The notes under the pieces are model-generated. The model was not told the DNA's origin and did not search any database. It saw only the letters and a list, made by a program, of their open reading frames with translations. From NCBI RefSeq assembly GCF_020745735.1, contig NC_083417.1:63860001-63924000 (forward strand): a stretch of DNA of 64,000 bases, given 5' to 3'. The translations under genes and the position numbers were made by a program. This DNA is from Hemiscyllium ocellatum (lineage: Eukaryota). How positions within the stretch are numbered: position 1 is the stretch's first letter; each line of letters starts with the position of its first letter. This document shows positions 7,426 to 57,062 of this stretch, piece after piece.

Positions 7426-8037
7426 TAAAGCATTTATTAACACGCTTACCTTCATTGCTCGCATCTTTGAATATGAGTGTTGAGACGTCATTTTGAGGTT
7501 ATTTGACGTTGGCGAGGCGTCTCCTGGACAGTTCTGGTCGCCCTGTTGAAGGGAGGATATCATCAAACTGGAGAGGGTTCAGAAAAGATTTACGAGGCTG
7601 TTGCTAGGAATAGAACGTTTGAGTTACAGGAAGAGGCTGGATAGACTGGGACATTTTTCACAGGAATATAGGAGGTTGAGGGATGGCAAGACAGCGGGGT
7701 TTTTTTCGAATCATGAGGGGTAAACACACGGTAATTGGTAGGTGACAATTTCCTATGGTGGGGGATTTCAAGACTTGGAGGCATTTTCTAAGGTGTGAGG
7801 CGAAAAATTTTAAAAGGAATGTGGGGGCACACTGTTACACAGAGAAGATTTCGTGTGTGAAATGAGTTTCCAGGGGAAGTGGTGAACTGAGGTACAGTTA
7901 CAATGATTAAAAGGCATGAATCAGAAATGTTTGGAGTGATATGAGCCAAGACCAGGCGGGTGCGGCTATTATAATTTGGGTTTATGGCTTGTATCGGCTG
8001 GCTGGGGTCTGTTTACGTGCTGTATGAGTTTTACTGT
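7426..8037 (+). mobile_element. CR1 3' fragment inserted in the TM exon
   Basis: CR1 C-terminal sequence (..LERVQKRFTRLL..) with 3' UTR; the same insertion is at 62837-63454. Confidence 0.85.
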
Positions 8038-8265
8038 TATTGACTTGGTGTATAAAAGGAAAGAATGTTTGCAAAGAATGACTAATAGTTGGTGATTTAA
8101 AGTATTGACAAGAAAGTGCCTTCAATTTTAATGTTTGCCTTACTATATTACAAAAGATTTCCGTGAACACTCTTCCTGAACAGTAATAGCCACAAAGTTT
8201 ACGCTTGAGATTTGTATAAATTGTACAGGAAGGTGAGTCTCTTTCTTGCACTGTTAGCTTCCTAC

Positions 8266-8564
8266 TTCAGGGATTATGTGTCGCAGCACCTGAAGTCTGC
8301 AGTGAGCTAGGAAAGGTGAACAGATATATGTGGTGTCACTTGGGATAGGTTGGATCTCAACCAAAGAGTTGGAAACTCCATACAGCCCATCGGGGTTCTT
8401 TGCATTAGTTATACGTATCACTATTGAGTTCTCAATATCATTTTTATATCAGGTGATCTGAGTTCCGACGGATGAAATGCAACTGTTTCACACGCGACCA
8501 TCAGAGACAACAGTGGAATTCATTTCAAGTGGCCTGCAGGCAATCTACAGTGAGCTTGGGGTCG
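8266..8564 (-). pseudogene. Ig C1-set exon remnant of pseudogene A
   Basis: After acceptor TTTTCTACAACTCAG: SLMVACETVAFHPSEL / IT*YKNDIENSIVIRITNAKNPDGLYGVSNSLVEIQPIPSDTTYICS. Aligns to the intact C1 (LLCETVPFYPDNFTLAWY...NGEGLFEVSSSL...YTCS); the core Trp is TGA (8449-8451). Confidence 0.88.
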
Positions 8565-9529
8565 CTGAGTTGTAGAAAACAAACCAAGTTATTACCGTAT
8601 TTTAACGTGGGAAATTGAATATAATTCAGATTAATATTTGGTAGTTTTATGATTAGAACACCATTCGAAAGTGATGCTTCTGTCATTTTAATGTTTCTCA
8701 CATCATCTGCACCTATGAATTCCATGGGCACGCCAGCATGCGATGAATTTCATGACAGCTGCATTTTCCTAGCTGTCAATTCGGAACAGGGATCACTGGA
8801 GTCGATAAGTTAACTCTGTTTTCTCTGCACCGACACTGCCAGACTGTCTGAGTTTCTCCAGCAACTTCTGCTTTTGCTTCAGATTTCCAGCATGCATAAC
8901 TCTTTGATTTAAATTTTGATAGCGCTGGGGTTAGGTAGAGCATCAAAATAGACCAACAGTCGTCTCTGCACTGGGGGAAGCACATTATTATAGATGATTT
9001 TCAATTATGATATGTTTACAACTTGTCCAGAATTTCCTCAGTTGTGCACATATTACATAATGTGCATAATAAGTATGTTATATTTGGAGGTCTAATTAAT
9101 CAGATTAAACTTCATTTGTTTTCGAGTTTCGAGAAAATTTGTAGCTCAGGTTGAGTTTCTGGATGTCGGTTTGCTCGCTGAGCTGGAAGCCTAATTTTCA
9201 TTTATTTCTAGTGCTCTGAGTCCGGTTTTATTTGTCTACCACGACACCACGAAAGGTGAAAGTACAATTTATCTGAAAATGTGCTGATATTCATGCTTTA
9301 GCTGACAAAAAAAAACGCAACACAATAATCATAAAAGCAAAACATAGTACTGCGGTTGCTGGAAATCCGAAACTAGCATGGAAATGGCTGGAGAAATTCA
9401 GCAGGTCTGGTGGCATCTGTGGAAATAAACAGATATGACTCTTCGTCAGTACTCAACCCTGCTTCTCTCTCCACAGATACACCATTTAAATCACAATAGA
9501 ACGCTATTGTGATGCATGATCAACAGTTC

Positions 9530-21261: not shown

Positions 21262-21960
21262 TTTTTAGTTGATGTTTCTGATTCCAAATATAATTATTTC
21301 TGTACCTCTCACACCAACTATGGGAGTCATCCAGCCTTCCCTACACCTACCAGCCTTTCCTTTCACCGGAATAGGAATATACATTCTCTGGATTCTCGTT
21401 ATCTCATTTTTGAAGGTTTCCCAATTTCCAGCGATCCCTTTACCTAGGTACATCTGCCTTCAATCAGCTTTTGAAAGTTCTTGCCCTAACACCGTCAAAA
21501 TTGGCCTTTCTACAATTTAGAACTTCAACTTTTAGACATTTTACCAACACTATTTTAAATCTAATAGAATTATGGTGGCTTGATCCAAAGTGCTCCCCCA
21601 CTGACAATTCAGTCACCTGCCCTGCCTTATTTCCTAAGAGCAAGTCACGTTTTGCACACTCTCTAGCAGGTACACCGACATACTGAATCAGAAAATTTTC
21701 TTGTACACACTTAACAAATTCCTTTCCATCTAAACCCTGAACATTGTGGTCGTCCCCTACCATAACTACTCTATTATTCATACAGATGGCTGAGCTCTCC
21801 TTACAAGTTTGCTTCTCAATTTCCCTCTGACTATTAGGGGGTCTATAATACTATCCCAAGAAGGTGATCATCCCCTTCTTATTTCTCAGTTCCACCCAAA
21901 TTACTTCCCTGGATGCATTTCCAGGAGTATGCTCCCACAACACAACTGTAATGCTATCTC
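21262..21960 (-). mobile_element. CR1 ORF2 endonuclease fragment
   Basis: EFVKCVQENFLIQYVGVPARECAKRDLLLGN...GEHFGSSHHNSIRF. Confidence 0.85.
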
Positions 21961-28690: not shown

Positions 28691-30670
28691 TATGCTGCCA
28701 TTAATCCAATCTGCCATAAATGCTGTTGGACAGTATATTCCTGTCAGGGTGAAAGGGAAGGCTAGTATGTATAGGGAATGCTGGATGACTAAAGAAATTG
28801 AGGGTGTGTTTAAGAAAACGAAGGAAGCATATGTCAGGTATAGACAGGATAGATCGAGTGAATCCTTAGAAGGGTAAAAAGGAAGGAGGAGTATACTTCA
28901 GAGGGAAATTAGGAGTGTAAAACGGGGACATGAGATAGGTTTGCCAAATAGAATTAAGGAGAATCCAAAGGTTTTTAACGAAAATATTTAGAACAAAAGG
29001 TTAACTAGAGAGAGAAAAGGTCCCCTCAAAGATCAGCAAGGTAGCCTTCGTGTTGAGCCACAGAAAATGTGGGAGATATTACATGAATATTTTGCATCAG
29101 TATTTACTGTGGAAAAGGATAGGGAATATACAGACTGTAGGGAAATACATGGTGACATCTTGAAAAGTGATTGCTGGGCCTCTTACTAAGCTATTTGTAT
29201 CATTGGTAGTCACAGGTGAGGTACCGGAAGACTGAAGGTTGGCAAATGTGGTGCCACTGTTTAAGAAGGGTGGTAAAGACAAGCCAGGGAACTATAGACC
29301 CCCAAGCCTGACCTCGGTGGTGGGCAAATTGTTGGAGGGAATCCTGGGGGACAGGATGTACACGTATTTGGAAAGGCAAGGACTGATTAGGGATAGTCAA
29401 CATGGCTTTGTGTGTGGGAAATGATGCCTCATAAACCTAATTGAGTTTTTTGAAGAAGTAACAAAGAGGATTGCTGAAGGCAATCTATATGGACTTCAGT
29501 AATGCGTTCAACAAGGTTCCCCATGGGAGACTGATAAGCAAGGTTAGACCTCATGTAATACAGGGAGAACTAGCCATTTGGATACAGAACTGGCTAAAAG
29601 ATAGAAGACAGAGTATGGTGGTGGGTGGTTGTTTTTCAGACTGGAGGTCTGTGATCAGTGGAGTGCCACAAGGATCGGTGTTGGATTCTCTACTTTTTGT
29701 CAGTTACATAAGTGATTTGGATGCAAGCATAAGAGACATAGTTAGTAAGTTTGCAGATGACACCAAAACTGGAGGTGCAGTGAACAGCGAAGAGGGTTAA
29801 CTCAGATTACAACAGGATCAGGAGCAGATGGGCCAATGTGCTGAGAATTGGCAGGTGGAGTTTAATTCAGAGCAATGCGAGGTACTGCATTTTTGGGAAA
29901 GCAAATCTTAGCAGTACTTATACACTTAATGTTAAGGTCCTAGGGAGTGTTCCTGAACAAAGATACCTTGGATTGCAGGTTCATAGCTCCTTGAAAGTAG
30001 AGTCATAGGTGGATAGGATAGTGAAGAAGGCCTTTGGTATGCTTTCCTTTATTGGTCAGAGTATTGAATACAGGAGTTGGGAGGTCGTGTTGCGGCTGTA
30101 CAGGACATTGGTTTGGCCTCTATTGGAATATTGCGTGCAATTCTGTTCTCATTCCTGTTGTAAAAATGTTATGAAAATTGATAGGATTCAGAAATGATTT
30201 ACAGATGTTGCCAGGGTTGGAAGATTTGAGCTTTAAGGAGAGGCTGAACAGGCATGTGCTGTTTTCCTGGAACATCGGAGTCTGAGGGGTGACCTTATAG
30301 AAGTTGACTCGATTATGAGAGGTATGGATAGCGTAAATAGGCAAAGTCTTTTCCCTGGGGTAGGGGTGTCCAGAATGGAGGGCATAGATTTAGGGTGAGA
30401 GGGAAAAGATATAAAAGAGACCAAAGGGGCAACTGTTTCACACAGTGGGTGATATGGGTATGGAATGAGCGGCCAGAGGAAGTGGTAGATGTTGGTATAA
30501 TTGCAACATTTTAGAGGCATTTGGATGGTGATTTGAATAGGAAGGGTTTGGAGAGACATGGGCTGGGAGCTGGCAGGTGGGACTAGATTGGATTGTGATA
30601 TCTAGACAGCATGGACGGGTTGGAACAAAGGGTCTGTTTCCATGCTGTGCATCTCTATGACTCCATGACT
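28691..30670 (+). mobile_element. CR1 ORF2 (RT) and 3' end
   Basis: ANVVPLFKKGGKDKPGNYRP, SQHGFV, GVPQGSVL, SKFADDTK, LEYCVQF. Confidence 0.93.
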
Positions 30671-34695: not shown

Positions 34696-36659
34696 AAAAT
34701 TGGGACTCAGACGAAGTAATGCAACACTGAGTACAAAATTTCTCCTTCGGTATTTTTGCCTTGCAATTGAGCTATTCAGGATTAAAAACTTACGGTCGCA
34801 GCATTATTTATGAAAGACACAAATGTCCAGGCTTCCCTACTAAATGTCCAAGGGGAAAAATTTCCATACTTGGGCAGGCTCCCTCCTGTGAAACCACAGC
34901 CAACGCTCACACACACTCATAGGGACAGGGAGGTACAAATTGCTGAGGGAATTTTGAGCAATGGGTTATGTTGACACTGTCTCGTGAAACATCCTGACAC
35001 ATTTCCTTTGCCTTTCAGTACAAAAGTGCAGGTGTCAATTAATTTTATTCGTACCTTTGAGATAAGGACGACACATGGGTTAATGGCTTCATTGTTGCCA
35101 GGTGTTAGGAGGGTTTAGTTATGGGTATCTATGTGATATGCTTTCTCTGATAAAGACGTCATATTAGAAGATTCCTACAGCCCCCTGCTGCACAAGTGGA
35201 GACACTCATTCTCTATATTCTTTTCCATTGTGACGCACATTGTCCAGCTCAAAATTCCAGCAAGATCGAAGAAAACAGTAGTACCTTAAAATATGAGGTG
35301 ACCATACCAGGCATGGTCTTACACTTATCCTCACCCTTGCCACAGTGACCGTTACGACAGATAAACCACGTTTCTCCCTGACTCCTTTTTTTAACTGTCC
35401 TTTTATATGACGTGGTCATTCAAACACAGTTGCTGCAACCCTTTCACAATTGTCAGTCCTCCTTCCCCGACTTTGCCTGAAGCATCCAGACTGCACGATC
35501 AAATTGCCATGACTCCTTCAAGTGACAAGAGTCTCCCTATGTTGATCCCAGGTGAACATAGAAAACAACTTCGACTACTCGATCCTTCAGCTGTGATCAG
35601 CCATTGAGTAATATTCATGGCCGATCAAATTTTAGCCTCAATTTTTCATTCCTTTGGTCATCAACAATTTAACAATTTCTGCTTTAAATTATTTTAAGAT
35701 TCTATATCCACTGCTTTTTGAGCAGAGGAACTCACACTCCTAACAACATAAGAATATAAGAGCCACAAGCATGTAAAACAAATGCCATCCCTCCATTCAG
35801 CTCTGCCATTCGACACAAACATGATTGATTTCCTTTCGTCCTCAACTACATTTTCCTGCTCGCTCCGAATTTCTCATTCATCATCTGAGACATCTTCATT
35901 TCTCATCACACTTTCCGTTTAGTTTCCGTGAACGGACCTGACAGGACAGCTCTGGGCAAACTGTGGCCCGATTCTTCACTTGTGTCTATCAATCTGCCGA
36001 GTAGTTTTAATCCCACCCTTGGACTAATCTCCGTGAAGCCAAAGGACTGGCGATATTCCAGTCCTTAGACTGCAGACTCTGACCAAGACCAACCTGATCA
36101 GGGACCTCACTTTTCCTTGTCCTTTAGAATTGCATGAGAGATTGCTCTTCACTTCATGTTCCAAATCATCCTAAATGCTTAGTACCACCAAGGTTTTGAG
36201 AAATGGCTACACATGATGTGCCTTTGGCTCATAAACTGTCAGCACTGATTGTTGAGTTAGACTGATAGAGCACATTGCCGACATCAGGTTCAATGTCCTA
36301 TTGATAAAGAATTGCTCATCTGCAAATCAAAGTTGCACGGCTTTGAGACTTCGCTAATAGTAGGGTAAAGCATAGATTCTGAGATGATACAAGAGATCAG
36401 TAATTGAATTCACGAGAAGCGAGCAAGCGAGGCAATATTCCATGTACTCAAAGTGTCTTTCCACCCGACTTTCAAAACAGGTCATTGGTGCTCTTGACAA
36501 CAACTTAGTAAAATTAATCCGGTATTAGAGTACAAGTACTAACTATTGCTATCTGATATATCGCTGCAATGCTTATACACGGAGAAGAGAAATTTAACAC
36601 GCCCGAAGTTCAAATCTGAAAAAAATGCAAACAAAACACGACCAAGTATCTTCCGCATC

Positions 36660-36842
36660 TTATTTGTTACGGCTTGCTATTTCTTGCTGGTGCATAGTTA
36701 TCTTTTGTTCCTTTTCGTCTTCAGTCTGCAGCGCTGCACACTCTGTGCCTTCTTTGGGATTTTGATACTTATCCGGTTTCATTGGACTACTCAACGTTAG
36801 CGCAGTATTTGTCACCTTATCAGCGACAGCGTCTTGTGCGAC
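36660..36842 (-). CDS. Exon 6: distal cytoplasmic tail and stop
   Basis: Acceptor AATTTACAG, phase 0: VAQDAVADKVTNTAL...KYQNPKEGTECAAL...ASRNK*. The polypyrimidine tract is weak. Confidence 0.6.
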   Translation of the reverse strand, partial: VAQDAVADKVTNTALTLSSPMKPDKYQNPKEGTECAALQTEDEKEQKITMHQQEIASRNK

Positions 36843-39800
36843 CTGTAAATTCAGCATTTAGGAATATTGTTGAAGTAATATGGAACAGGATGTCTGCAAA
36901 GTGGTCATCAGGAGGACTTGGAAATGATTTTCTGTATCTCTCATGGTCAATGTCAACTGAGGCAAAAGCCTTCACTGACATCCTGAATCTCGATTTCATC
37001 CTAATAATGTAAATTCTTCTTAGGTTATTCAGTTTTACCTCAGCGTACGTGCTTTTCTCTACTTCAAATATACGTCTTGGAGTTCTCTTGCCTCTTCTGA
37101 ATTCTGCTGCACACCCTCCGACAGCGCTTCCTGCGATGGATAGACGCAAAATATTTAATTAAGTCCCTATTTCATGTCTTCAACAATTCGTTCGCCAATC
37201 AGTGAACAAATGTACCATTGGCCCGACATCGCTTGCAGCATCCACGTTTCAGATATATTCACGTGATTACAAATATTACTGTATTGTGGGCAATTTTACA
37301 ATCTAAACTTTTCTTCACGTGCATTTCATAACATAATGTTTCAATGTCAAAAAGTGTCGGCATTGGAGAGGATTTGTTTTCAATCGAAATAATGACTGAA
37401 AGTGTAAAGTTTTATGAGCTAGAAACATTCTTATAAATATGACCAGATTTTAAATGTCCAATTAACATTATTTATCAAAAAGAGCATTGCACCAACTGCA
37501 TTTCAAACGTCGTTGAGTGAGCATTTACTTCAATAAATAACCCGAAAACGTTCAGAGGTGATTAGCATATTTCTGGCATCACTGCAAGCGTCCCGGGGAT
37601 TGCAAACCCCTGTGGTGATGAAGGCATGAACTCACCACCTTGTCAAGACGATCCGGTTGCCTTGTGCATTCTCCATCATCTGAATACCAATGAAATATAA
37701 TTACACTGTGAGATGGAATTATTAACTCAGTTTCCGTATGGAAAATGAAGTACTACATTTCTGAATCAAAGCGATAGAAAAAGACTGTCAATGTTCAGTT
37801 GATACACAACAATAATGAAGAAGGGAGAATATGACATGGTCAACAGCAGTTTCTAATCTTCCCGTTCTTAAAGGAAGAATCATTGCTCAGAAGAAGAATC
37901 ACATTGCCAGCTTCATTTCTGGCAGGGTACAGTTCATTAGTTATGTTCAAAAGTGACGTTTTTCTTTGGAAACTAATACTCCTGAGAAATATTAACATTC
38001 TAATGAATTGTACCCTGCCAGAAATGAAGCTGGTAATGTTCAAAAGTGACGTTTTTCCTTGAAAACCAATACTCCTGAGAATTATTAACATTCTGATAGC
38101 AAAGTTATAACGATTTCTGTGTTATGAAATGGGTCTGAAACAATTTGAATTCGCTAAGACAGTAAGCAATTGCGTTTGCACCTTTAAATCATTTGGCTTT
38201 CTCCCGAAAATACAAATTCCCTTTCATCCCTTTTATTGTCTTCACACATCAACTAGATCGATAATCAAGAGTTGACAGTATTTCTTACTTCTGTTACATA
38301 GAAGTCCATATCGCGTTACAATTATGGTCACAAGCACGAGAAACGAAAATCCAAGTGCCGCACAAATTGGATTCCTAAAACTGAATGAATTGTTGATATT
38401 GTCTGCAAAATTAAGAGGACATTAATTGCTGGTGGTGCTTGGATAGGAACTATTAAAAACTATAAGAACCGCATTATTGAAGGGCAGTGAAAAAGCAGAA
38501 GTGCCAAATATTCTTTCAGTTGAATGTCGAAGTCACTTCCATTTCCAATAGATGGCAAATTCTGAATCAGTTTCTGGAATGGATTGTTGGTTTGTACATC
38601 ACAAAGGATTGTTTTGCAAAGGTCAGGACACAAAACTGGACGATTACCCTTGGACTAAAATACTGATCTTCTTGACTTTATTACGTATTAACACGCGTTT
38701 TCTTGAAATTAGAGTCATGATTTCACAAGCATTTTCTTCGCTGGTAACATCAAATTCTAAAATGGGGCGATCGGATGACGAATCTTTTGCATATATTTGA
38801 GCTGTCTTTTTGATATTCATTGTATAACAAAAGACATCTACTGCTTTGTAAATTGTCGTTTTAAGACAGGACAATATATTGTCAAAGTTAATGCATTAAC
38901 TTTGCCGCACCATAGACAAGTCTCGTCCTCAAATAAGCTTTGTGTTAAGTGTGAGCGTGATTCCGATTAAACGTGCCATGGATAGTTGAGAGATAATACA
39001 GTACTTGGGAAGGGATGTCTTAGAATTCTGCCCTGGACACGACCAACGGGGAATGCAGGGTGGGCGAAACCAAACAAAACAAAGACCTCCCTACAACAGT
39101 ATAGGGAAAGTAGGTAGTCGGCAGGAATGAAGTATTTTCACACGTAAGCAAAACTGGTGAATGAGATGAAGGCAGAAACGGAAAGTACAGCTCACGTCTG
39201 AACATTATTACTACGACATAAATAAAGGAATTAGAATATAAATAAGGTTTTGTTGCTTTTAACACAAATGACAACTTAATATAAGGAATTAAAATATGGC
39301 ATTTACCACGAAAACACTGCAGATTAACTCCATAATATGCATACATTATGCGATGCATTTCATTACATACAATAACAGTAGTTAACTCGCCTTGTTGGTC
39401 TCCAGAAAGTGTGAAAATCGTGCGCATGACGACAGCAGGAGTCTTTAGGGAGACGTGAGATACCGAACAGGTATACGTGGTATTACTCGAAGGAGGTTGA
39501 GACACAGCCAAAGAACTGGATACTTCAAACAGCCCCTCGCCGTTCTGCATCTTTTTAGTATTTATTCCGACTGTAGTTTCGGAGCTGTTTATATACCAGG
39601 CGAGAGTGAAATTGTCCGGATAAAATGGAACTGTTTCACACAGAAGGGTCAAAGAAACTGGTGAGGTTTCATTATCTAACTTGGACGTAATTTTCAGTGG
39701 TACTGGGGAAACTGCATGAAGAGAATTGAAAAAGCCATGTTTATTGTACAAAAACGGAAAATGTTAAATTTGAGTATGCTTTTAAACCGCTATGTTTTAT

Positions 39801-41227
39801 CCCATTCTCAGCAATGAAAGACGCAGCTTATTGCCTACATAACTTTATGTGTAAGCTTTCGAACTGTGGCATTTATTCACCTTTACTTGAAGTATCATCT
39901 CCAATTCTTGTTTTTTTTTCTCAGCAGAAGAAAACTGCAATTTGCTAAGAAATGTTAGTCTCTCGTATTTGAATAAATTAATTCAATTGAGTCAGGGCAG
40001 TGGAAAGGACAAAGAAAGTAATGTTCATCAGCCCTTGTGCTTTGACTCTCACATGAAGAGTAACCATGAAAATGCTGCTTGACGTTCAAATGACGATTAT
40101 TACTTTAGCCAAATTCAAAACCAAAGTATTGTTACTCAAAAAATATATTAAATCTGTTGAACCCCAGGAGCTACAGATTCTCAGTATTGTTTTAGAGACT
40201 GATTCTGAGGCACCGATTCTACTGCGTTGTATGCTTCAAAATATGACTTATTTTGCATTGCTTCCCTTCATCAGTAAGTAACTTCACTCTGATTTTCAAA
40301 CCATGACGCGAAAATTATGTAAGAGCAAATTTATGTACGCTTCAACCTCAGAAGGAGTAATTGGGGATAGTCAGGGCATCAATGTCACACCACAGAGTAG
40401 CTGGATTGTTGTGCTAGCATTAACATAAGTTGCTTGTTGTCGAGTATATGCATCGGAAATTCTGCTGGTAAACGCCTGGTATTTAAGGTGCCTTTGGAAT
40501 TACGATGGTTAATAGTTATAATAGTTTCAGTTTTCTGCCTGTGATATTGATTGTCCAATTACAATGCTTCAAGAGAATCGAATTACTAAGTGCAGGTCAC
40601 TGCTCAAATGATCAGTCCCCATGATTAAACTGCAAACGTTCATGAAATAAGCGATCATAAGATATCTTGTTACTTCAAAATATTTCACACAGTATCACGC
40701 TCTCACTTACCGTGCACAAATAAATGAGAACCAGTTCCATTTATTTGACTTATTCCTTGATAAATCACACCGCAGTAGTAGACTCCAGAATCTTGAATGG
40801 TAACGCTCAGCAAGTTACAGAAAGCTGATGTTTCACTGTCAACACCAAATCGTTTTCTGAAACGCCTCTGAAAATAATCATTTCCAATCTGCTTCCACCA
40901 TATAGCCTTTGGTTTTGAACCGGGCCGAGAGCTGGAGAATTTGCATTGGAATGTGACGTCCTCCCCTCGGTTCACATTTATTTCTTTGGGCGTTTGAGTA
41001 ACACTGAACGATGTTTGATCCGCAGCTGTTAGAAACAAAGTAAGATGCCGATAACTGTCAATAATTCAATATTTCAACAGAAAGATGAATCAATATTCTT
41101 TAAATGAGCGAGGACCTGCTTCAAAAGCATTTAATTAATTAAAGCAGATCTGTCAATTAAATAATCAAGTACCGGTAAGAATAGACTCAAGTAGAATCAA
41201 ACAGAGAAAATTCATCCTCGCTGTCAT
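36660..41227 (-). CDS. Intact non-rearranging VJ-C1 Ig-superfamily receptor with ITIM-type tail (SIRP/NKp30/NITR-like architecture), 359 aa predicted
   Basis: join(41173-41227, 40711-41025, 39391-39711, 38289-38402, 37039-37130, 36660-36842) = 1080 nt, open throughout, with phases 1/1/1/1/0. Leader, V, C1, TM and two cytoplasmic exons; six N-x-S/T sequons in the ectodomain. Confidence 0.8.
37039..37130 (-). CDS. Exon 5: proximal cytoplasmic exon
   Basis: Acceptor CTATCCATCGCAG, phase 1: (R)SAVGGCAAEFRRGKRTPRRIFEVEKSTYAE; donor GAG|GTAAAA. Confidence 0.7.
38289..38402 (-). CDS. Exon 4: stalk + transmembrane
   Basis: Acceptor TTAATTTTGCAG, 114 bp phase 1-1: (D)NINNSFSFRNPICAALGFSFLVLVTIIVTRYGLLCNR; donor A|GTAAGA. 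Confidence 0.82.
39391..39711 (-). CDS. Exon 3: Ig C1-set domain
   Basis: 321 bp phase 1-1: LLCETVPFYPDNFTLAWY, NGEGLFEVSSSL, YTCSVSHVSL are C1 signatures; acceptor CTTCATGCAG; GC donor AAG|GCGAGT. Confidence 0.92.
40711..41025 (-). CDS. Exon 2: germline-joined VJ-type Ig domain
   Basis: 315 bp phase 1-1: VTQTP, FQC, IWWKQ, DSGVYYC and J-like NGTGSHLFV; acceptor TTTGTTTCTAACAG, donor G|GTAAGT. Confidence 0.93.
41173..41227 (-). CDS. Exon 1: signal peptide
   Basis: ATG at 41227: MTARMNFLCLILLESILT + G|GTACTT. The donor is weak but has the correct phase 1; the intron to V is 147 bp. Confidence 0.65.
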
Positions 41228-41293
41228 TCTCAGCAATGGATTCAACTGACGACTCTGCACAGTTAGTGCGAGTTGGTAACTGCTGAGATCCGT

Positions 41294-41333
41294 TTCCGGT
41301 TTGTTTTCTGCGAGGTATGTCGCAATGACGTTT
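41294..41333 (-). promoter_or_regulatory. Putative ETS + CRE half-site promoter module
   Basis: TTCCGGTT (41294-41301) and TGACGTTT (41326-41333), 67-106 bp upstream of the ATG; the pair is repeated upstream of pseudogene A. Confidence 0.5.
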
Positions 41334-43835
41334 AACACTCTGAGAGTGCAGTTGGTATTTGAGCCTCATATGCTCAACGTTACTTTGTAGTTTCTGTATT
41401 TATTTCACGTCTGAAATCACACGTACCACTGTAAGCAAAGTTTCAGAAAAGCCATTTCATTTTCAAATGCAAAGTTAACTCACATTGTTGATGTTCATAC
41501 TGTTTGAAAACACGAGTTGATCTGATTCCGTCGTTCTCTTGGTCAGTGCGTCCAGATCTTAACCACAATTTTGGGCACGTGGCATTTGTTTTGACCTTTT
41601 ACCATAATGGAAGGCTCTGGTTCTTGTCACTTCTTTAATGTGATCAGTAGGCTATAATCCATTCCTTTCCGAGTTCTTGTAATATGAACAAGTGCATCAA
41701 ATCTCCTCTCAACTTTGTCTTCATAAATGGAGATTGCCCGAGTGTCTGCACTAAACTCCGTCCTCCGTCCATGGAATCAGCCATGTTTTGTGTCAGTCAT
41801 CTCTCAGTGAGTTGGGATTTCATTTCTATGCTAGAATATTCTGAGTGCAAATTACACTTCTAAAAGAGAACACAAAAACCAAGGCAGACAGTAATGGAAC
41901 ATACTGCAATAGCAGGGGTGCCACGTTTCAAAAGGGTGTTAAATAATCCTTGCAGATCTTTTTTTCAAAGAAGTGCTCTGGAATTATTGGCGTTCTTGCC
42001 AAGATTTGCGCTTCATTCAGCATAAAAACTCAGATTGCCTTTTATTAAACGGATTGCCGTTTGCCGAGGTTGGCAGGGTATGATGTCAGCTGCGTTTTTT
42101 TTTAATGACAATGAATACACTTGTAAAACAATCCATTAAGTGCAACGTGGTGTCAGAATTACAAACGTCCTACAAAAGCTATGAAATTGAAAGATTTGTT
42201 TCATTTTTAGTTCAGTTCAGTCCGAGCAGTGTTTGGTAAATCTGCACCAGAATTTCTTTGCCTTAGTAGAATATGGTCATGCTTATAATGCCAAAGGCTG
42301 AGGAAGAATTATTCACTATTTGCTCTACTTACTTTGTCACTTTCACCAATTTGTGCACAAATATGCCTGGTCCCTCTACTCTGGAACTCAAAGTAAGACT
42401 GTTCCTTTCATTTGATATTGTCTGCTCCTGTTTTTTGCTGGTTGCTATCTTTGCTACGAGTACAGCAACTTCGATTTGACTCTGTGCGCATTAGGTTTGA
42501 TATCTGCCTTGCTTCCTGAGATGTTATTAAAATGTTTTCGAAGTACCATATATCAGAACATCCACATTCTCTATTATTTAGGAAAATCATAATCAAGTTA
42601 ATCAGACATGCTTTGCCTTTCGGAAATGCGGATTGATTCCAGAGAGGGGCAGGAGTTGGGCAATTGGCCCCTCAAAACTGCTCCAATGTTTAATATGGTC
42701 ATGGCTAATCATCCAACTCAGCACCCTGTTTTTGCTTTCTTCCCACACCCTTTGATCTCTTTATCTCTAGGAACAGTATCCAACTCCTTCATGAAAACAT
42801 TCAACCGCTTTCTATGACAAAGAATTAATTTGTTTTTTTTATGACAGAGGATGGAAACAGAGCAGTAAAGAGAAAACCAGGTGATGACATGCAACAAAGG
42901 TTGTCGAGGTAATAGGGAAAAGGAAGACCAAGATGCAGCAGCACGTTGCAAGTTGATCAACTTTGAGAAGCGGTGTTGAGTCAAATACGGGTTGTTGTCA
43001 GTTTGTATGTTCACTGATTTGAAATAATAGCTAAATTATTAACCCACGAGGGCAAGTGAATCCAATTTAAATAGGTAAAATGGAAGACATGATGCAAGGC
43101 TCGAGTAGGTAAAAACACTGACTGCAGATGCTGGAAACCAGATTCTGGATTAGAGTGGTGCTTGAAAAGCACAGCAGTTCAGACAGCATCCAAGGAGCAG
43201 GAAAATTGAAGCTTTGGCCAAAAGTGTCACACTTTTCAAGTGACACTTCCACACGCCACTGTGTTCCCGGGCCGTCTTTGTATCGGGTTTGCTGCTCGCC
43301 TCTGCCTGAGACAACAGTTAACCACAATGGAATGTATTTTGCAAGGCAGAGAACAAATTGCCTTAATCAATTTATTCTTTTATTCTAAAAATATATCAAA
43401 AATACCAAGCATCCAAAATATCAAAATATCAAAATATTCCCAAATAGAACTTGTGAGCAGTTAAAGGAAACTACACAAGTCACCCTCTGCTTCTTTTGCC
43501 CAAAACGTCAATTTTCCTGCTCCTCAGATGCTGGCTGAATGGCTGTGCTTTTCCAGCACCACTCTAATCCAAAGTAAGGATCCAGTAGTGCAGTAGTGCT
43601 GTTCCTAACTCGGAAACAGAAAACTTCATGCCTGGCCTGCTTCAAACGTATATAATAATGTCTGAAAATATTGAATATAATTTGTCTGAAGTGCATAATA
43701 CTCTGATCAGAAATATTGAATTTCTTAAAATTCAAGAATTGAGGAACTTTCCTGGCACCGTGCAAACAGAAGGAGTCAGAATTTGCTTTTTTGCCAAATA
43801 ATGTAATCCTGGTATTTTGATTTTCCTAAAACTTA

Positions 43836-44070: not shown

Positions 44071-44743
44071 GAGCTGCTGGTGTTCGGCTGGGGTGGACAA
44101 GTTAAGAATCGCACAACAACAAGTTACAGTCCAACAGGTTTATTTTGAAGCACTAAATTACGAAGTTCTGCTTCTTCATCGGGTGGTTGTGAAACAGTAC
44201 CAGAAGACACAGAATTGATAGCAAAAGATGACTTTGATACAATGATACATTGAACAAACCTAGATTGCTAAGTCATTCATCTTTTAGAATGGATTTGCTG
44301 GTTACGGTTCTTTAATATGTAAATTCCAGAAGTTCTTTTAAAACACATTTTCAAAATAATCTAAGGTTTTTATAACAAAAGCTGACATCTCAACTCAGAC
44401 AATGCCTTACAGCTGCGCAGTTAGAGCCTGACTGTATCCCAAATTTGAGACAGACTCGTTCTTTTCCAAAGCAGAATTTACAAGTATTATATGAATTCAT
44501 TGCCTGCATTGAGTGCTTGCAGTTACTGCATTTTTTAAGCAAAATAGAACGCATTTGGAAGTTTAATTCTGCAAATACAAAATCACCCCATAAACTTATA
44601 TGTGTGTGGCGTGCAGGAGAGAGAGATCACGTGATAGCAAGGGAGCAGAGCAGAAGCTGATAGCCAAGTACGGTCCTATGAGAATGGCTTCGACCATAAC
44701 ATTGGGTTAATGTCACACGACATGGGAACCCACTCCAACATCG

Positions 44744-44775
<32 letters not shown>

Positions 44776-45126
44776 AGTACACACACACACTTCCATACTC
44801 AGATACTCACACAGACCCTCTCTCATACACAAAATCTCTCTCATATGCACACACATGCGCCTCCGACACCCACACCCACGCACACACCCTCTCACAGGCT
44901 TATACCCCATCACACTCACATCCGCACTTTGCCAAGCTTTCACACACGCAAGCACATACTCGCTCACATTCACTCACACTCACGCACTCACACTTACTCC
45001 ATCTCCCTCTTCTGCACGCGCACACACATATTTGCTTAACACACATAAAGCAGTGAATCGAAGGCTCGTGCTTCCAAATAAATCTGTTGGGCGATAACCT
45101 GGTGTTGTGTGATTTTTAACTTTGTC
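44071..45126. mobile_element. Penelope-like element remnant with inverted ends and CA-rich tract
   Basis: Terminal motif GGACAAGTTAAGAATCGCACAACA... at the left and its reverse complement ..TGTTGTGTGATTTTTAACTTTGTC at the right; internal CA tract like 1-345. Confidence 0.6.
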
Positions 45127-48300: not shown

Positions 48301-51262
48301 TTTTCGAATGCTGAGGCTGGTATATGCCCTTAAAGAGTTACCCTATCTCCAGATGCAATGTTACATTATCATCATTCAAAGTATGCTGATGGTGAGCCCC
48401 GAGACCTTTGTCACAGCTGAACAGGAAAACGTGCACCAATAATCACATCCCCACTCTGAAGCAAAGCAAATCAGATGGTTGCTGCTAGATTTAACCCAAA
48501 TGTCAGAATTGGTAGCAGAAAATGGAAAATAACATCCTCCTTCTAACAATACAACAGGCTAAGTGAATTGTTCGATTGATACCCTTGACTGCAAGAAAAA
48601 AGATTACTTTGTACGTTAACATGCTGAAACACTAACTCTGATGCTATGTGGCATAGACACTGACAGATCTGTCAGATAATAAGTGCTACTTCAAGAACAT
48701 GGAACAGGTATATTACAGGATAAACAGGGAAACTAACATTTAATGATTGATATTTCATCAATTATAAACACGTTTGCAGTTGATTAATCTAATATTTGGT
48801 TTAAGAATAACCAAAATAGATCTTGATGTTCCTGCATCATGTGATCGTGCACTTAATTTCGTTTGACAAAAAAAAAACGTGATTGAAACAGGGTAACGAT
48901 GATAATCTAATGTATAAAGTTACAGCTATAAGTTTGAGAAGGGTGCATTTAATTTCAGATACATGGAACCAAGGTTGAAAAATTCTCAACTAATTGCCCT
49001 TTATCAAGAAATTAGAGCAACTGCATTCTTCTACCTTTTATTCCTCGGCATTTAACGATTAATTAAACATAACCTTTACATGAAAATTAAACTTTTATCT
49101 ATGTATTTGGATTCCTAATTGTTGATTCTAATATTCTTTCAGACTAATTTTCTTTAAAAATTAGCATACTATTAAATCACAAAAGTTGAAGGATATCAAC
49201 CTTGGATCCTAAGTCTATATATGGTTGGAGAGACAGTTAGAGGCAATGAGGAATTCACAAGAGCAAGGGGTGTGATGGATGGCAGTAATAGGAAGGGAGA
49301 AAAGTCTCAGATACAGTCACATCGATGGGGTAACTCCAGGAATGGTAAGAGTGTGTTGGAAAATTTAAGGGGCAATGGATTCTAAGGGGAGAGTAGCACG
49401 AACAGCCAAGTTTCTGGTATTGAGACTGGCTCTAATGCAATGAGGCTTACGACTCGTTCCAAGAAATCAATTGTGTTAAGGGACCCTCTAGTCCGAGGTA
49501 CAAACAGATGTTTCTGTGGCCAACAGTGAAAAATCAGAATGGCATGTTGCTTCCCTGGTGCCAGGATCAAGGATGTGTCAGAGAAGGTGCAGAATGTTTA
49601 CAAGGCTGAGGAGGGGAGGCGGGAAGTCTTTGTCCACAATGGAACCAATGGCATAGGAAGGGAAAAGGTTGATATTCTGAACGAAGATTACAGAGAGTTA
49701 GGCAGGAATTTAAAAAGGAAGTCCTTGAGAGTAATAATATCTGGATTAATCCCAGTGCTACGAGCTAGTGAGGGCAGGAATAGGAGGATAGAGCAGATGC
49801 ATGCATGTCTGAGCAGCTCGTATATAGGAGAAGGATTCACATCTTTGGATCATTGGAATCTCTTTTCGGGTGGAGGTGTACAAAAAGGACGGAATGCACC
49901 GAAACTGTAAGGATCTAATATATGGCAGGGTGATTTGTTACAGCTACTCGGGTGAATTTAAACTGATAAGGTGGCAGGGTGGCATCCAGGGAGATGTGAA
50001 GAAAGATCAATCTGAGACACGTTAAGTTGAAAACAGAAGCGAGTCAGACGGTCAGTGCAGGCAGGGACAAAGCAGAGAACAAGGGAGGACTAATAAATTA
50101 AACTGCATTTATTTCAACGCAAGAGGCCTAACAGGGAAGGAAAATGAACCCAGGGCATGGTTAGGACAATGGGATTGCGAATTCATAGCAATTACGGAAA
50201 CATGGCTCAGAGATGGACAGGTCTGGTACAGTAATGTTGCAGAATACAAATGCTACAGGAAAGATAGAAAGGGAGGGAAGAGAGGAGGGGAGTGGTGTTT
50301 TTGATAAGGGATAATATTAAAAAGAGGATATTCCCAGAAATATATCCAGGGAAGTTATTTGTGTGGAATTGAGAAATAAGAAGAGGATGACCACATTACT
50401 GGATTAGAATTCTAGACCTCCTCATAGTCAGAGGGAAATTGAGAAACACATTTGTAAGGAGATCTCAGTTATCTAAAGAATAATGGAGTGGTTATCCTAG
50501 AGGCTTATAACTTTCCAAACAGAGACTGGGACTGCCATATTCCTAAGGGCTTACATGGAGAGTAATTTGTTAAGTGTGTACAAGAAAATTTTCTGATACA
50601 GTTTGTGGATGTACATATAGGGAAGGTGCAAAACTTGACTTACTCTTGGGAAATAATACAAGGCAGTTGTTTGAGGTGTCAGAGGGGCAGCACTTTGGGG
50701 TCGGCGACCAAATTCTATTAGTTTTAAAATTATGATGGAAAAGGACAGACCAGATCTAAAAGTTGAAGTTCCAAATTGGAGAAATGCCAATTTCGACAGC
50801 ATTAGGCAAGAGCTTTCAAAAGCTGATCGGGGGCAAATTGTTCACAGGTAAAAGGATGGCTCGAAAATGGGTAGCCGTCAGACATGAGATAATGAGAGTC
50901 CAGAGAAAGTACATTCTTGATGCGACGAAAGGATAGAGTGGGAGGTACAGGGAACGCTGGATGCCTAAAGAAATTGAAGGTTTCGTTAAAAAAGAGAAGG
51001 AAGCATATGTCAGGTATTTTCAGGATCGATCGAGTGAACTCTTAGAAGACAATAGGAGTATAGTTAAGAGGGTAATCAGGAGTGCAAATAGGGGACATGA
51101 GATCGTTTTGGCAAATAAAGTAAAAGAGAATCCAAAGCGTTTTTACAAATACATCAAGGACAAAGTGGTAACTCGGGAGAGAATAGGGCCCCTCAAAGAT
51201 CAGCAAGGCACACTTTGTGTGGAGCTGGAGAAAATGGGGGAAATACCAAACATTAAATGAGT

Positions 51263-51662
51263 AGAACATAGAACATAGAAAAATACAGCGCAGTACAGGC
51301 CCTTCGGCCCTCGATGTTGCGCCGACCGAAGCCTACCTAACCTACACTAGCCCAATAACCTCCATATGCTTATCCAATGCCCGCTTAAATGACCATAAAG
51401 AGTCCACCACTGCTACTGGCAGGGCATTCCATGAACTCACAACCCGCTGAGTAAAGAATCTACCCCTAACATCTGTCCTATACCTACCACCCCTTAATTT
51501 AAAGCTGTGTCCACTAGTAACAGCTGACTCCATTAGTGGAAAAAGCTTCTCACTGTCAACCCTATCTAAACCCCTAATCATCTTGTACATCTCTATCAAA
51601 TCTCCCATAAACCTTCTTTTCTCCAATGAGAACAGCCTCAAGTACCTCAGCCTTTCATCATA
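51263..51662 (-). mobile_element. Young antisense CR1 3' fragment with (GTTCTAT)n tail
   Basis: Uninterrupted frame YDERLRYLRLFSLEKRR...WNALPVAVVDSLWSFKRALDKHME; tail AGAACATAGAACATAG at 51263. Confidence 0.88.
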
Positions 51663-52297
51663 CCAATATTCTGCATCAGTATTTACTGTGGAAAATGTCA
51701 TGGAAGGTATAGAATGTAAGGAAATAGATAGTGACAGCTTGAAAAATGTCCATATTGCAGAGAAGGAAGTGTTGAAATGCGCAGATCTAACGAAATAGAG
51801 GGAGAACAAACCAATTGGATACAGAACTGTCTCAAAGGTGGAAGACAGAGTGTGGGCTGTAGGGTTGTTTTTCATATTGGAAGCCTGTGACCAGTGGAGT
51901 GCCACAAGGGTCGGTGCTGGGTACACAACTTCTTGTGATTTGGATGTGAGTATAAGAGGTATAGTTAGTAAGTTTGCAGATCACACCAAAATTGGAGGTG
52001 TAACTGACAGCGAAGAAGGTTACCTCAGATTACAACGGGATCTTGATTATATGGGCCAATGGGCTGAGAAGTGGCAGAAGGAGTTTAATTTAGATAAGTG
52101 CAAGATGTTGCATTTTGAGAAAGCATATCTTAGCAGGACTTATACATTTTATGTTAAGGTCCTAGGGAATGTTGCTGAACAAAGAGACCTTGAAGTGCAG
52201 GTTCGTAGCTCCTTGAAAGTGGAGTCGCAGGTAAATAAGACTGTGAAGAAGGCGTTTGTTATGCTTTTCTTTCCTGGTCAGAGTATTGAGTACAGGA

Positions 52298-53497
52298 TGG
52301 GAATTTGTTTTGCAGAGTTTTCTTCCCCTGTCTAAGTGACATCCTCAGTGCTTGAAAACCTCCTGTGAAGCGCTTCTGAGATCTTTCCTCTAGCATTTGT
52401 AGTGGTTTGAATCTGTCGCTTCCGGTTGTCAGTTCCAGCTGTCCGTTGCAGTGGTTGGTATATTGGGTCCAGGTCGATGTGCTTATTGATCGAATCTGTG
52501 GATGAGTGCCATGCCTCGAGGAATTCTCTGGCTGTTCTTTGTTTGGCTTGTCCTATAATAATAGTGTTGTCCCAGTCGAATTCATGTTGCTTGTCATCTG
52601 CGTGTTGGCTACTAAGGGTAGCTGGTCGTGTCGTTTCATGGCTAGTTGGTGTTCATGGATGCGGATCGTTAGCTGTCTTCCTGTTTGTCCTATGTAGTGT
52701 TTTGTGCAGTCCTTGCATGGGACTTTGTACACTACATTGGTTTTGCTCATGCTGGGTATCAGGTCCTTTGTATTCGTGAGTTGTTGTCTGAGAGTGGCTG
52801 TTGGTTTGTGTGCTGTTATGAGTCCTAGTGATCGCAGTAGTCTGGCTGTCAGTTCGGAAATGCTCTTGATGTATGGCAGTGTGGCTAGTCCTTTGGGTTC
52901 CTTAGGCATCTGTTGATGAAATTGCGGGGTTATTCGTTTTTGGAAAATACATTGTAGCGGTGTTCTTCTTCCTCTTTTTGCAGTTCTGTTGAACTGCAGT
53001 GTGTTGTGGCCCTTTTGAACAGTGTTGTTGCGCTTTTGAACAGGACAAACAGGAAGACAGCTAATGATCCACATCCATGAACACCACCTAGCCACGAGAC
53101 TGCACGACCAGCTATCCTTATTAGCCACACACTCAGAAGACAAGCAACATGAATTCGAAGGGGAAAAACACTACTATTATAGGACAAGCCAAACAGAGAA
53201 CAGCCTGGGAATTCCTAGAGGCATGGCACTCATCCACAGATTCAATCAATAAATACATCGACCTGGACTCAATATAGCGACCACTGCAACGGACAGCTGG
53301 AACTGACAACCGGAAGTGACAGATTCAAATCACTACAAATGCTGGAGGAAAGATCACAGAAGCGCTTCACAGGAGGCTACCAAACACTGAGAATGTCACC
53401 TCCACAGGGTACGTAAAGTCTGCAACACAAATTCCCAGCTTGGCGAACAGAACCACAACAACGAACACCCGAGCTACAAATCTTCTCACACATATTT
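52298..53497 (-). mobile_element. Penelope-like element (GIY-YIG) with inverted arms and a 9-bp target-site duplication
   Basis: VYKVPCKDCTKHYIGQTGRQLTIRIHEH (GIY-YIG); AGTACAGGA at 52289-52297 and 53498-53506. Confidence 0.9.
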
Positions 53498-55004
53498 AGT
53501 ACAGGAGTTGGGAGGTCATGTTGCGGCTGTACAGGACATTGGTTAGGCCGTATAATTCTGCTCTCCTTCCTATTGGAGAACTTGAAAGGGTTCAGAAAAG
53601 ATATACAAGGATGTTGCCAGGTTTGGAGGATTTGAGCTTTAGGGAGAGGCTGAACAAGCTTGGGCAGCTTTCCAGGTGCATCAGAGGCTGGGGTGGGGGA
53701 GGGGGATGCCCTTATAGAGATTTACAAAATCATCAGAGGCAGGAATAGGATAAATAGGCAAAGTCTTTTCCCAGGCGTAGGAGTGTCCCGAACTAGAAGA
53801 TATAATTTTAGGGTGAGAGGGGAAAGACATAAAAGAGACCTAAGTGAAACGTTTTTCATGCAAAGGGTGGTATGTGTAAGGACTCAGCTCCCAGAGGAGG
53901 TGGTGGAATTTGGCACAATTACAACATTTAAAAGGCATTTGGATGGGTATATGAATACGAAGGGTTTGGAGGGATATGGGCCAGGCGCTGGCAAGTGAGA
54001 TTAGATTGAGTTGGGATATCCGGTCGATGTGAATGGGTTGGATCGAAGGTCTGTTTCCATGCTGTACATCTCTGTGACTCTATCTGAATTTGTCTCTTTT
54101 GCAATGATGTAAAGAATATTTGTAATAGAATTTATCTTAGCGAAAAGTCGTAAAGTGAAAATAACAAAATTTAATTAAGAAGTTGGGCTCTTGGATAATT
54201 GACAAGTTAAAGAATCAGAAAAGAGACAGTGGGAGGTGATAACTTCCAAATTCCATAATCCTTAAGAGCCAATTAGAAATTGAGTTTGCATCCATAGAGA
54301 TAAGAAACATGAAAGTTAGAAGCAGCAGTCGGCAATTTGACCCCTTAAGCGCCAACACCATTCAATTTTATCATGACTGGTCATTAGGCCTAGTCCCTTG
54401 ATCCTTCCCTCCCCTCCATCCCTTGATCCTCTTAGTCACACGGGCTATGTCTACTTCCTTCTTGAAAATGCATAATGTTTTCACCTGGACCATTTTCTGT
54501 GGTCGCAAATTCCACAGGGTCAACACTCTCCGGGTGAACAAATTTAACTTCATCTCAGTTACTTGTAATCATCTCATGTTTGTCTATTCTCATCGCGTAA
54601 GCCAATTTGTAATAGGTCTTGCTCATCTGAGGCCAATCAGAGAATAACGATGGAATTGAGCATGCTGTATGTTTTATTTGTGGCTTGGAAACAGTTGATA
54701 AACTAAAGCTTTTGAAGTAAAGGCACGCATGAGGGTTTCATATTATGCTGCTTCTAGTTGGACATGACATGTTCATAAGGTATTGGAGAGAAACTGAGAA
54801 ACAAGTGTCAACCTGCAGCATAAGCAGAATCAGATAAAAAGAGCCCAAATATCTGTGAAGTCACTGTTCTGCTTTAAAAGGTAATATTTATAACCTGAGC
54901 AAAGTTACCTGAGTTATTGCACAAAACTATCTCTTGTTTCCTTGTTTGAGTGGAACACCCCCGAAACTTGCTTAACACCTGCCAGTGGGATACATTTTCA
55001 GAAG

Positions 55005-55640
55005 GTTCAATTAACACAGGTGCAGGGGGAGTGCTTCAGTGGTCAAGGGCATTCAACCTCGGACCTTTAACATCCTCCTAGGCAGACTTCGGGACACGTG
55101 AGAATTCAGAGTTGCCGAATAGAGGCTGATAATCATGTTCGGTATCCATAAGGGCAGTCTCAACCTGGACATTAAGTTCATGTCACACTACAAATGACCC
55201 AATCACACTATACACATATTGATATGCACCGGCACATGTACACACATACTCTCACACAAATACGGACTCTATCTCATACACACAACATATTCACACTCAC
55301 CTCTCTCATACGCACACATTCCCTCACACTCACTCACACTCTCTCAAGCACACACAAACTCACATGCATGCTCTCACAAATATATACTTCCGCACAATTG
55401 CACACACCACCTCTCTCAAGCAACACGTTCTCTCAAGCGCATGTGCACACACACAAATACACCCGCACTCGCTCCATCAAACACGCCCTCTCATACGTAA
55501 GTTCTCTCTCTCGCTCTCTCTTTTTCTCTGTCTCTCTCTCCCACACATACACATGCACACACAGATATAGAACTATGGGGTGAATTTGCATTTGCAGACT
55601 TGTATTCGCAGATGCATTCTATTTTGTTCAAAAACCACAC
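55005..55640 (+). mobile_element. Penelope-like GIY-YIG C-terminus + CA-rich 3' tract
   Basis: GECFSGQGHSTSDL remnant, then the CA tract paralogous to 1-345. Confidence 0.7.
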
Positions 55641-57062
55641 AATGAAGGAGTCAAGAATGTTGATGAGGGCAGAGTGGTAGACCTCATCTATGTGGATTTC
55701 AGTAAGGCCTTTGATAAGATTCCAAATAGTAAGCGGCTTTGGAAGGTTAGATCACATGGAATCCAGGGGGAGTTGGCAAATGACGTTCTCAATTGACTTG
55801 ATAGGAAGAACAGGGTAATAGTGGAAGGATGTTTGTTGGACTGGAGGCCTGTAACTAGTGGTGTGCCTCAGGTGTCGGTGCTGGGACCATTGTTTTTGTT
55901 GATTATATTAATGATTTGGATGAGAATTTACAAGGCATGATTAATAAGTTTGTAGATGACATTAAAATAAGTGTTATTATGGACAGGGAGGAAGGAAGGT
56001 TATCAGAAAATGCAGCAGGATATTGATCAGCTGGGGAAGTGGGCCAAGATATGGCAAATAAAGTTTAATATAGATAAGTGTAAGGCGTTGCATTTTGGAA
56101 AGTCAAATCAAGGTAGGAGTTTCATGGTGAATGGTTGCGCAAAAGGGAGTGTCGTGGAACAGGGGGACTTCGGAGTTCAGGTTCACAGTTCTCTGAAAGT
56201 GAAGTCACAGGGAGACAGGGTAATGAAGACAGATGTTGGCACATCTGGCCTTCATCAGTCAGATTATTGAATTTTGAAGTTGGGAAGTTGTGTTGATGTT
56301 GTATAGGTCATTGGCGAGACTGCGCTTGGAATGTTGTGTTCAGAATTGGCTACCTTGCCATAGGAAGGATGTTATTAACCTGGAAATAGTGATGTACGAG
56401 GATGTTTCCAGGACTCAACTGTCTGAGTTATAGGGAGAGATTAAACAAGGTAGGACATTTTTCTTTCGAGCCCAGAAGACTGAGAGACAATCTTTTGAAG
56501 TGTATCAGATTGTGTGAGGCAAGGGTAGGGCGAAGGCACTCAGTCTTTTTTTCCAGGGTTGGTCAATTGAGAATTAGAAGGCATCAGTCTAAGTTTAGAG
56601 GAGATAGAACAAAAGGGAACCTGAGAGGCAACATTTTTGCATAGAGGGTAGTAAGCATATGGAATCAGCTGCCAGTGGAAGTTGTTGAGGTGGATACAAT
56701 ACCAACATTTAAAAGGCAGTTGGATGAACACATGGATAGGAAAGGAATAGACGGATCTACTGTACTCTGGCATAGTGAATTCCACTGATTCATGATCTTA
56801 AGAGAGAAGTAAAAAGGGACAGTTCAGCAACTCTTGCATAGGTACATGGAAGATAGTATAATGAAGGACATATATTAGAGTAGGATAAAAGGCCGGCAAA
56901 ACATTGACAGCCAAACAGCCTGGACTGTGTTGTACTGTTCTATGTTCTATAAGGAAAGGGGTCAAGTGCAGGGAACTGGAATTCGTGTAGATGGACATTT
57001 TTTGTGGCATGGACCAGTTTGGACCAAAGGGCCTGTCTCCATGTTGTACGACGTTATGACTA
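55641..57062 (+). mobile_element. CR1 fragment (paralog of 346-1780)
   Basis: Same breakpoints and RT motifs as copy A. Confidence 0.9.

Follow-up and report, generated by a model that had tools for sequence, protein, structure and literature searches.

A seven-exon V-C1 receptor gene in the epaulette shark

The window analysed here is a stretch of 64,000 nt from the epaulette shark, Hemiscyllium ocellatum (contig NC_083417.1, positions 63,860,001 to 63,924,000), and the gene in question lies on its minus strand at 36660-41227; all coordinates below are window positions unless stated otherwise. The gene encodes a receptor with one immunoglobulin (Ig) V-set domain and one C1-set domain, and it belongs to a 'SIRP-like' receptor family of cartilaginous fishes. 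An earlier note, made from the sequence alone, had read it as an intact six-exon inhibitory receptor with an immunoreceptor tyrosine-based inhibitory motif (ITIM) in its tail. Comparison with a zebra-shark relative instead gives seven exons, as follows.

41173-41227, minus strand: exon 1 (55 nt), ATG at 41227, then the initial part of a split leader; ends in phase 1
40711-41025, minus strand: exon 2 (315 nt), V-set domain with the J-like G strand NGTGSHLFV; both ends in phase 1
39391-39711, minus strand: exon 3 (321 nt), C1-set domain, followed by a GC donor (AAG/GCGAGT at 39390)
38289-38402, minus strand: exon 4 (114 nt), stalk and uncharged transmembrane segment ICAALGFSFLVLVTIIVT
37636-37679, minus strand: exon 5, the mini-exon (44 nt), encoding NDGECTRQPDRLDKV; phase 1 to 0
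37039-37130, minus strand: exon 6 (92 nt, versus 102 nt in the zebra-shark relative), first tail exon
36660-36842, minus strand: exon 7 (183 nt), last tail exon, with the stop TAA at 36662-36660

When the six exons of the earlier model, which leaves out exon 5, were joined by script, the minus-strand join was indeed free of stops over the 1080 nt claimed for it, with the first four junctions in phase 1. It translates into 359 aa that comprise a split leader, a V-set domain with its J-like strand, one C1-set domain, a transmembrane segment and the tail motif STYAEV. This motif matches the ITIM consensus (S/I/V/L)xYxx(I/V/L) and straddles the last exon junction, exon 6 closing in the exon-skipped frame with S-T-Y-A-E (37053-37039). 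The donor after the C1 exon is the GC listed above and not a GT. The intron after the C1 exon is of the GC-AG type in both the epaulette shark (39389-39390) and the zebra shark (11994-11995 of the fetched locus, L001), and beyond the GC donor the window frame stays open for another 123 codons (open reading frame (ORF) 39751-39020).

The closest protein found was XP_059507523.1 of the zebra shark, Stegostoma tigrinum (P0152), and its locus aligns collinearly with the window across exons, introns and flanks. The seven exons of that locus (55/321/321/114/44/102/135 nt, compared with 55/315/321/114/44/92/183 nt in the window) translate exactly to XP_059507523.1, and the zebra-shark model likewise splices out of the C1 exon at this GC donor; the V domain of the window gene is 2 residues shorter. 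The exon overlooked in the six-exon model, at 37679-37636, is present in the annotated zebra-shark coding sequence. It has a ttcag acceptor and a gtgagt donor, its 44-nt length is equal in the two species, and at 84% identity it is the best conserved exon of the gene; the full-length family members that were aligned also have the segment that it encodes. Between the two loci, intron identity is about 71-72%, and exon 1, which is 55 nt long in both, is 80% identical. The C1 exon and the mini-exon are conserved above the intron level, while the V and transmembrane exons are conserved no better than introns. From these comparisons we infer that the gene model needs seven exons and that the normal mRNA would include the mini-exon.

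A 10-nt deletion that would shift the tail out of frame

Alignment with the zebra-shark exon revealed a 10-nt deletion in exon 6, between 37108 and 37107, through which the first tail tyrosine codon is lost; the first tail exon accounts for 34 residues in most of the aligned full-length relatives. The gene runs for 849 nt from the ATG through the mini-exon without a stop or frameshift. With seven-exon splicing, the frame then shifts and a TAG at 37061-37059 ends the protein at 306 aa, with the tail ...VEALSEGVQQNSEEARELQDVYLK and without an ITIM. The earlier description of an intact ITIM receptor therefore holds solely for an mRNA that skips the mini-exon. That the six-exon ORF stays open is due only to the sum 44 + 10 = 54, such that skipping the mini-exon offsets the deletion. 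The TAG lies 20 nt upstream of the last exon junction, and since nonsense-mediated decay usually follows a 50-55 nt rule, the seven-exon mRNA should escape it. Other nearby splice sites were examined for one that could bring the frame back while the mini-exon is kept; there was no acceptor of the right phase, and the sole donor at a multiple of three was a weak GTCTTG after 30 nt.

Full tails in the family carry four tyrosine motifs, VxYAxL, TVYAQ, LTYAAL and TEYAEI. Three of the four ancestral tyrosines are gone from the window gene, the first through the deletion and the third and fourth through Y>N and Y>C substitutions in exon 7, where the former motifs now read, in the ancestral frame, VTNTAL, with the N codon at 36809-36807, and TECAAL, with the C codon at 36740-36738. 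Most relatives have kept the tyrosines of motifs 1, 3 and 4 (for motifs 3 and 4, most of those with aligned full tails); in the window gene only STYAEV keeps its own. At the end of exon 7 (36660-36720), a 1-nt indel relative to the zebra shark lies just past ...AALQT, and the ORF continues for about 16 aa more before the TAA.

Pairwise ratios of nonsynonymous to synonymous substitution (dN/dS) against the zebra shark, which come from samples too small to tell whether the tail is still translated, were as follows.

V exon: dN/dS 0.38, 106 codons
C1 exon: dN/dS 0.63, 106 codons
Transmembrane exon: dN/dS 0.82, 37 codons
Exon 6 after the deletion: dN/dS 1.5, 21 codons
Exon 7: dN/dS 0.40, 40 codons

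The transmembrane exon, which at 60% identity to the zebra-shark exon falls under the ~71% of the introns, seems on these figures to evolve unusually fast.

If the main mRNA were instead the six-exon form, the product would be the 359-aa V-C1-transmembrane receptor, whose single ITIM, STYAEV, would recruit SHP-1/SHP-2 and inhibit the cell. The stop-free in-frame join, the fit of STYAEV to the consensus, a tail frame that stays open for 91 codons and the dN/dS of 0.40 in exon 7 all favour such an mRNA. The exon that would have to be skipped is, however, the best conserved of the gene (84%), is flanked by an AG acceptor and a GTGAGT donor and stands in the coding sequence of the relative, and the first ten tail residues of the six-exon ORF are out of the ancestral frame. 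Moreover, two independent length changes would give an in-frame result with a chance of one in three, the two most conserved tyrosines of the family (LTYAAL and TEYAEI) are mutated in the window gene, and the undeleted variant described below is in frame only with the mini-exon. We therefore consider regular skipping of the mini-exon unlikely; judged from the alignments, the apparent six-exon ITIM receptor is a coincidence of frame.

An undeleted form of exon 6

Four public sequencing runs were mapped on the region and yielded short contigs with even depth over introns and exons and no splice joints, which makes them DNA-like. One contig of run X2 stops matching the window at 37107, and its unmatched letters consist of a 10-nt insertion after which 18 of the 20 following bases match again. 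Inserted on the minus strand, these 10 nt (ATACACTGTG) restore a 102-nt exon 6 that reads EAPSQGVQYTVAEFRRGKRTPRRIFEVEKSTYAE, and with them the seven-exon coding sequence is in frame over 1134 nt and encodes 377 aa. The undeleted form is open only when the mini-exon is included, and the variant thus supports both the seven-exon structure and a recent deletion. An undeleted version thus exists in the DNA of the species, as an allele or in a close paralogue, and the deletion looks recent.

The same contig bears on a second alternative, in which the deletion is an assembly error or a minor allele and not typical of the species; the normal gene would then be a 377-aa seven-exon receptor with the tail tyrosines VQYTVA and STYAEV, the latter a canonical ITIM. 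The X2 contig with its undeleted 102-nt exon, and with 18 of the next 20 bases as in the window, speaks for such a gene, but no second contig of this kind was seen and its source could be a paralogue, and among the rows listed for runs X1, X3 and X9 there was no insertion at 37107. A suitable paralogue is to be expected, as a segmental duplication of about 55 kb (2-8584 versus 55289-63998, 84-87% identical) leads one to expect a sister copy at a distance of about 55 kb, immediately ahead of the window start. We regard this alternative, too, as improbable.

Inside the window no DNA-level paralogue of the 36660-41227 gene was found. The two duplicates contain family genes at the following positions.

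9868-9542 (V) and 8565-8263 (C1), minus strand: family gene in the first duplicate
63927-63628 (C1), minus strand: family gene in the second duplicate

The C1 exon at 8565-8263 aligns with relatives as two pieces and not as one, a sign that it may be frameshifted. In runs X1-X3, contigs over 36000-41700 form two classes, one without any difference from the window and one that differs from it by 4-5% in clustered changes, and each of the three individuals has both, a sign of either very divergent haplotypes or a close paralogue.

The frameshifting deletion and the three lost tyrosines would also be expected of a young pseudogene that is no longer expressed and whose ectodomain exons are open only because they have yet to decay. 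The apparent damage to neighbouring family copies, such as the C1 exon in two pieces, and the intron-like conservation of the V and transmembrane exons fit this explanation as well. Against it, all seven exons keep their splice sites, the C1 exon and the mini-exon are conserved above the intron level, the 849 nt from the ATG through the mini-exon are undamaged, the canonical Cys and Trp residues are intact, and the premature stop should not trigger nonsense-mediated decay. Taken together, we find loss of expression very unlikely.

The predicted product

We conclude that the main product of the gene is probably the ITIM-less 306-aa form. On this reading the gene is a seven-exon member of a cartilaginous-fish 'SIRP-like' V(J)-C1 paired-receptor family, situated in a tandem, partly duplicated cluster, in which the leader, V, C1, transmembrane and mini-exons are intact, the first tail exon has been shortened by 10 nt and two later tail tyrosines have been substituted. 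Its mRNA, with the mini-exon included, would encode a 306-aa V-C1-transmembrane protein with a short tail that holds neither an ITIM nor an immunoreceptor tyrosine-based switch motif (ITSM). Such a protein could still bind a ligand through its V domain. It would not be expected to recruit SHP phosphatases or, because its transmembrane segment has no charged residue, to pair with adaptors that carry an immunoreceptor tyrosine-based activation motif (ITAM). By analogy it may be a tail-less decoy or adhesion form, as SIRP-gamma is to SIRP-alpha. That the gene encodes an inhibitory receptor, as the earlier note had it, is thus doubtful for the window copy: STYAEV would be read only in an exon-skipped mRNA or in the undeleted variant, and three of the four tail tyrosines are gone.

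Several observations weigh against the ITIM-less form as the main product. The last 275 nt are stop-free in the ancestral frame and the dN/dS of exon 7 is 0.40, and the tail may thus continue to be translated, for example through exon skipping. The 10-nt deletion is possibly an assembly error or a minor allele. Searches of public runs for the sequence turned up DNA-like runs only, two small RNA-labelled runs contained none of it, and the zebra-shark model is itself an automatic prediction.

A family of V-C1 receptors in cartilaginous fishes

To place the gene among its relatives, we used its C1 exon in an exhaustive HMMER search of 1.8 billion representative proteins, which gave 593 matches; a protein word search with the same exon gave no match. 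Among the 150 matches listed, dozens were proteins of 200-420 aa that align with the window gene over the V, C1, transmembrane and tail segments. Identity to these relatives is 30-60% over V and C1 together, and the C1 domain is 39-66% identical to that of family members. All of the named V-C1 relatives are cartilaginous fishes, including the zebra shark, Mustelus, Scyliorhinus, Heterodontus, Heptranchias, Hypanus, Hemitrygon, Mobula, Amblyraja and Callorhinchus, and searches with XP_059507523.1 and with the family profile returned cartilaginous-fish proteins only, none of them labelled as a product of the window. Members such as S. tigrinum XP_059507523.1, Mustelus asterias XP_078066559.1 and Callorhinchus milii XP_007902824/5 carry automatic names that are mixed, ranging over the family from 'tyrosine-protein phosphatase non-receptor type substrate 1-like' (that is, SIRP-alpha-like) and 'SIRP beta-1-like' to 'tapasin-related protein-like', 'MHC class II beta-like', 'CD276 homolog' and 'Ig lambda-like'.

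We fetched 80 members and sorted them by type. A transmembrane segment with ITIM-like motifs in the tail was present in 35 of the 80, and 11 had an Arg or Lys in the transmembrane segment and no motif; 15 had an uncharged transmembrane segment and no motif, and the other 19 had no transmembrane segment. Judging by these sequences, the family consists of paired receptors, some of them inhibitory, some of the activating type and some without a tail. The window gene shares with the family a V-set domain and J-like strand in a single V(J) exon (NGTGSxLxV), a single C1 exon directly after it, a split leader, a transmembrane exon, the 44-nt mini-exon and tail exons, and thus the seven-exon plan. Unlike the inhibitory-type members, it carries the 10-nt deletion, its tail is out of frame under seven-exon splicing and it keeps one of the four tyrosine motifs. 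Literature searches on shark SIRP-like V-C1 receptors gave no description in the library searched. The window gene is therefore a real member, and one of many tandem copies, of a receptor family that is known from automatically named cartilaginous-fish sequences and has not been described.

Domain structure

Pfam assigned the V exon to the V-set (1.4e-11) and exon 3 to the C1-set (4.5e-11), and the canonical Cys and Trp residues are intact. The claim that the V exon already holds its J-like G strand was confirmed: the exon ends in NGTGSHLFV, and both exact and relaxed scans for recombination signal sequences (RSSs; heptamer-spacer-nonamer) were empty in and beside it. In an alignment of 25 V members of the family, G96, G98, L101 and V103 are kept. 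The J-like motif is at the same time an N-glycosylation site (NGT). Only one C1 exon lies between the V and transmembrane exons, and the proposed ectodomain of a single V and a single C1 domain likewise stands, with a germline-joined V(J) exon and one true C1-set domain; the leader is split and the introns are in phase 1.

Structure prediction had been proposed as a check; AlphaFold (AF2) models were built on the family alignments. Both domains were modelled with confidence (predicted local distance difference test (pLDDT) 85 for V and 88.5 for C1), the V model matching V domains and the C1 model a C1-type domain. In Foldseek, the best match of the V model was the IgNAR V domain (TM-score about 0.8), followed by SIRP-alpha domain 1 (rank 7), T-cell receptor (TCR) V-alpha and light-chain V domains, with nearly equal E-values. 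The V domain is compact: only 63 residues separate its two cysteines, and the model shows hardly any C' or C'' strand.

The best Foldseek match of the C1 model was the beta2 domain of major histocompatibility complex (MHC) class II. Among PDB sequences, the C1 exon matched a shark UrIg2 chain best (5e-15), and IgA or other Ig heavy chains and MHC II beta gave similar scores. Other top matches of the C1 exon were named as UrIg2-like proteins with multiple C1 domains, assorted Ig and MHC proteins and lungfish SIRP-like proteins. Since the top matches are mixed, the resemblance is that of a generic C1 domain. Exon 3 thus encodes a true C1-set domain, and these data place it no nearer to UrIg2 than to other C1 domains. 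Profile searches of the PDB were dominated by multi-domain Ig proteins and did not separate affinity to SIRP, to UrIg and to antigen receptors.

Comparison with SIRP, UrIg and rearranging receptors

Like mammalian SIRP-alpha, SIRP-beta and SIRP-gamma (the SHPS-1 family), the family combines a V domain containing a J-like strand with a following C1 domain and has inhibitory, activating and tail-less forms, and its tail consensus, starting xxYAxL, is a further likeness. The difference from mammalian SIRP-alpha (V-C1-C1) that had been pointed out is real, there being one C1 domain in place of two. By sequence, SIRP-alpha did not appear in the top 60 PDB matches for either the V exon or the family V profile, but by structure it ranks 7 in Foldseek for the V model. 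The family profile found no bony-vertebrate proteins, and no conserved neighbours of the gene were seen in the window.

UrIg and UrIg2 (PDB 9dmx) of elasmobranchs have a non-rearranging single-exon VJ, a split leader and C1-type domains (Flajnik 2025, PMC12227049). The window gene resembles them in its single-exon VJ, split leader and C1-type domain and differs in having one C1 domain, compared with three C domains in UrIg and nine or more in UrIg2, neither of which has an ITIM tail. In the ray Hemitrygon akajei, P0008, the UrIg2 orthologue (4e-81 against 9dmx), and P0156, a member of the present family, are found on separate large contigs of 62.8 and 91.7 Mb, respectively. With IgNAR V, the best structural match, the window V domain as modelled shares its compactness and a reduced or absent C'' strand. 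RAG joins V, D and J segments to make IgNAR V, whereas V and J form one germline exon in the window gene, and identity between the two is only 20-24%. In contrast to Ig light chains and TCRs, the window gene has no separate RSS-flanked V and J segments, V and the J-like strand being contained in one exon.

The earlier note had also linked the gene to the proposed substrate of RAG transposon insertion. The link holds as a general property of V(J)-C1 genes; the window gene has no special claim to it, being one of many tandem copies of its family. The likeness of a V(J)-C1 layout to an antigen-receptor precursor has already been argued for SIRP-alpha (Hatherley 2009, PMC2785349), and UrIg and UrIg2 are more specific current candidates for that precursor (Flajnik 2025, PMC12227049). 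The window copy is a case of ordinary gene birth and death in a multigene immune family and has no special bearing on the origin of antigen receptors.

The separate threads could be joined into a larger picture, which we offer as a long shot. A recent, perhaps segregating deletion would have disarmed an inhibitory receptor and turned it into a tail-less decoy within a paired-receptor cluster, in parallel with the step from SIRP-alpha to SIRP-gamma, and exon skipping might supply a weak isoform with a single ITIM. The family, with its germline VJ exon, single C1 domain, split leader and compact IgNAR-like V domain, could be the living one nearest in layout to the receptor that RAG invaded. Independently of this picture, a gene model that looked intact is now corrected, and the family may merit a proper description: sharks, rays and chimaeras have inhibitory, activating and tail-less V(J)-C1 receptors that so far bear only inconsistent automatic names.

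Other features of the window

Intron 4 of the gene contains, within 37901-38097, a direct repeat (38097-38033 and 38004-37940, 91% identical) and a 144-nt inverted match. Elsewhere in the window, ORF fragments resembling pieces of retrotransposon proteins occur at 12048-14093, 21464-21781, 29471-29800, 49539-52335 and 53660-56270, and simple-repeat ORFs rich in His and Thr at 44710-45039 and 55194-55583. The intergenic DNA of the cluster appears to consist mostly of repeats.

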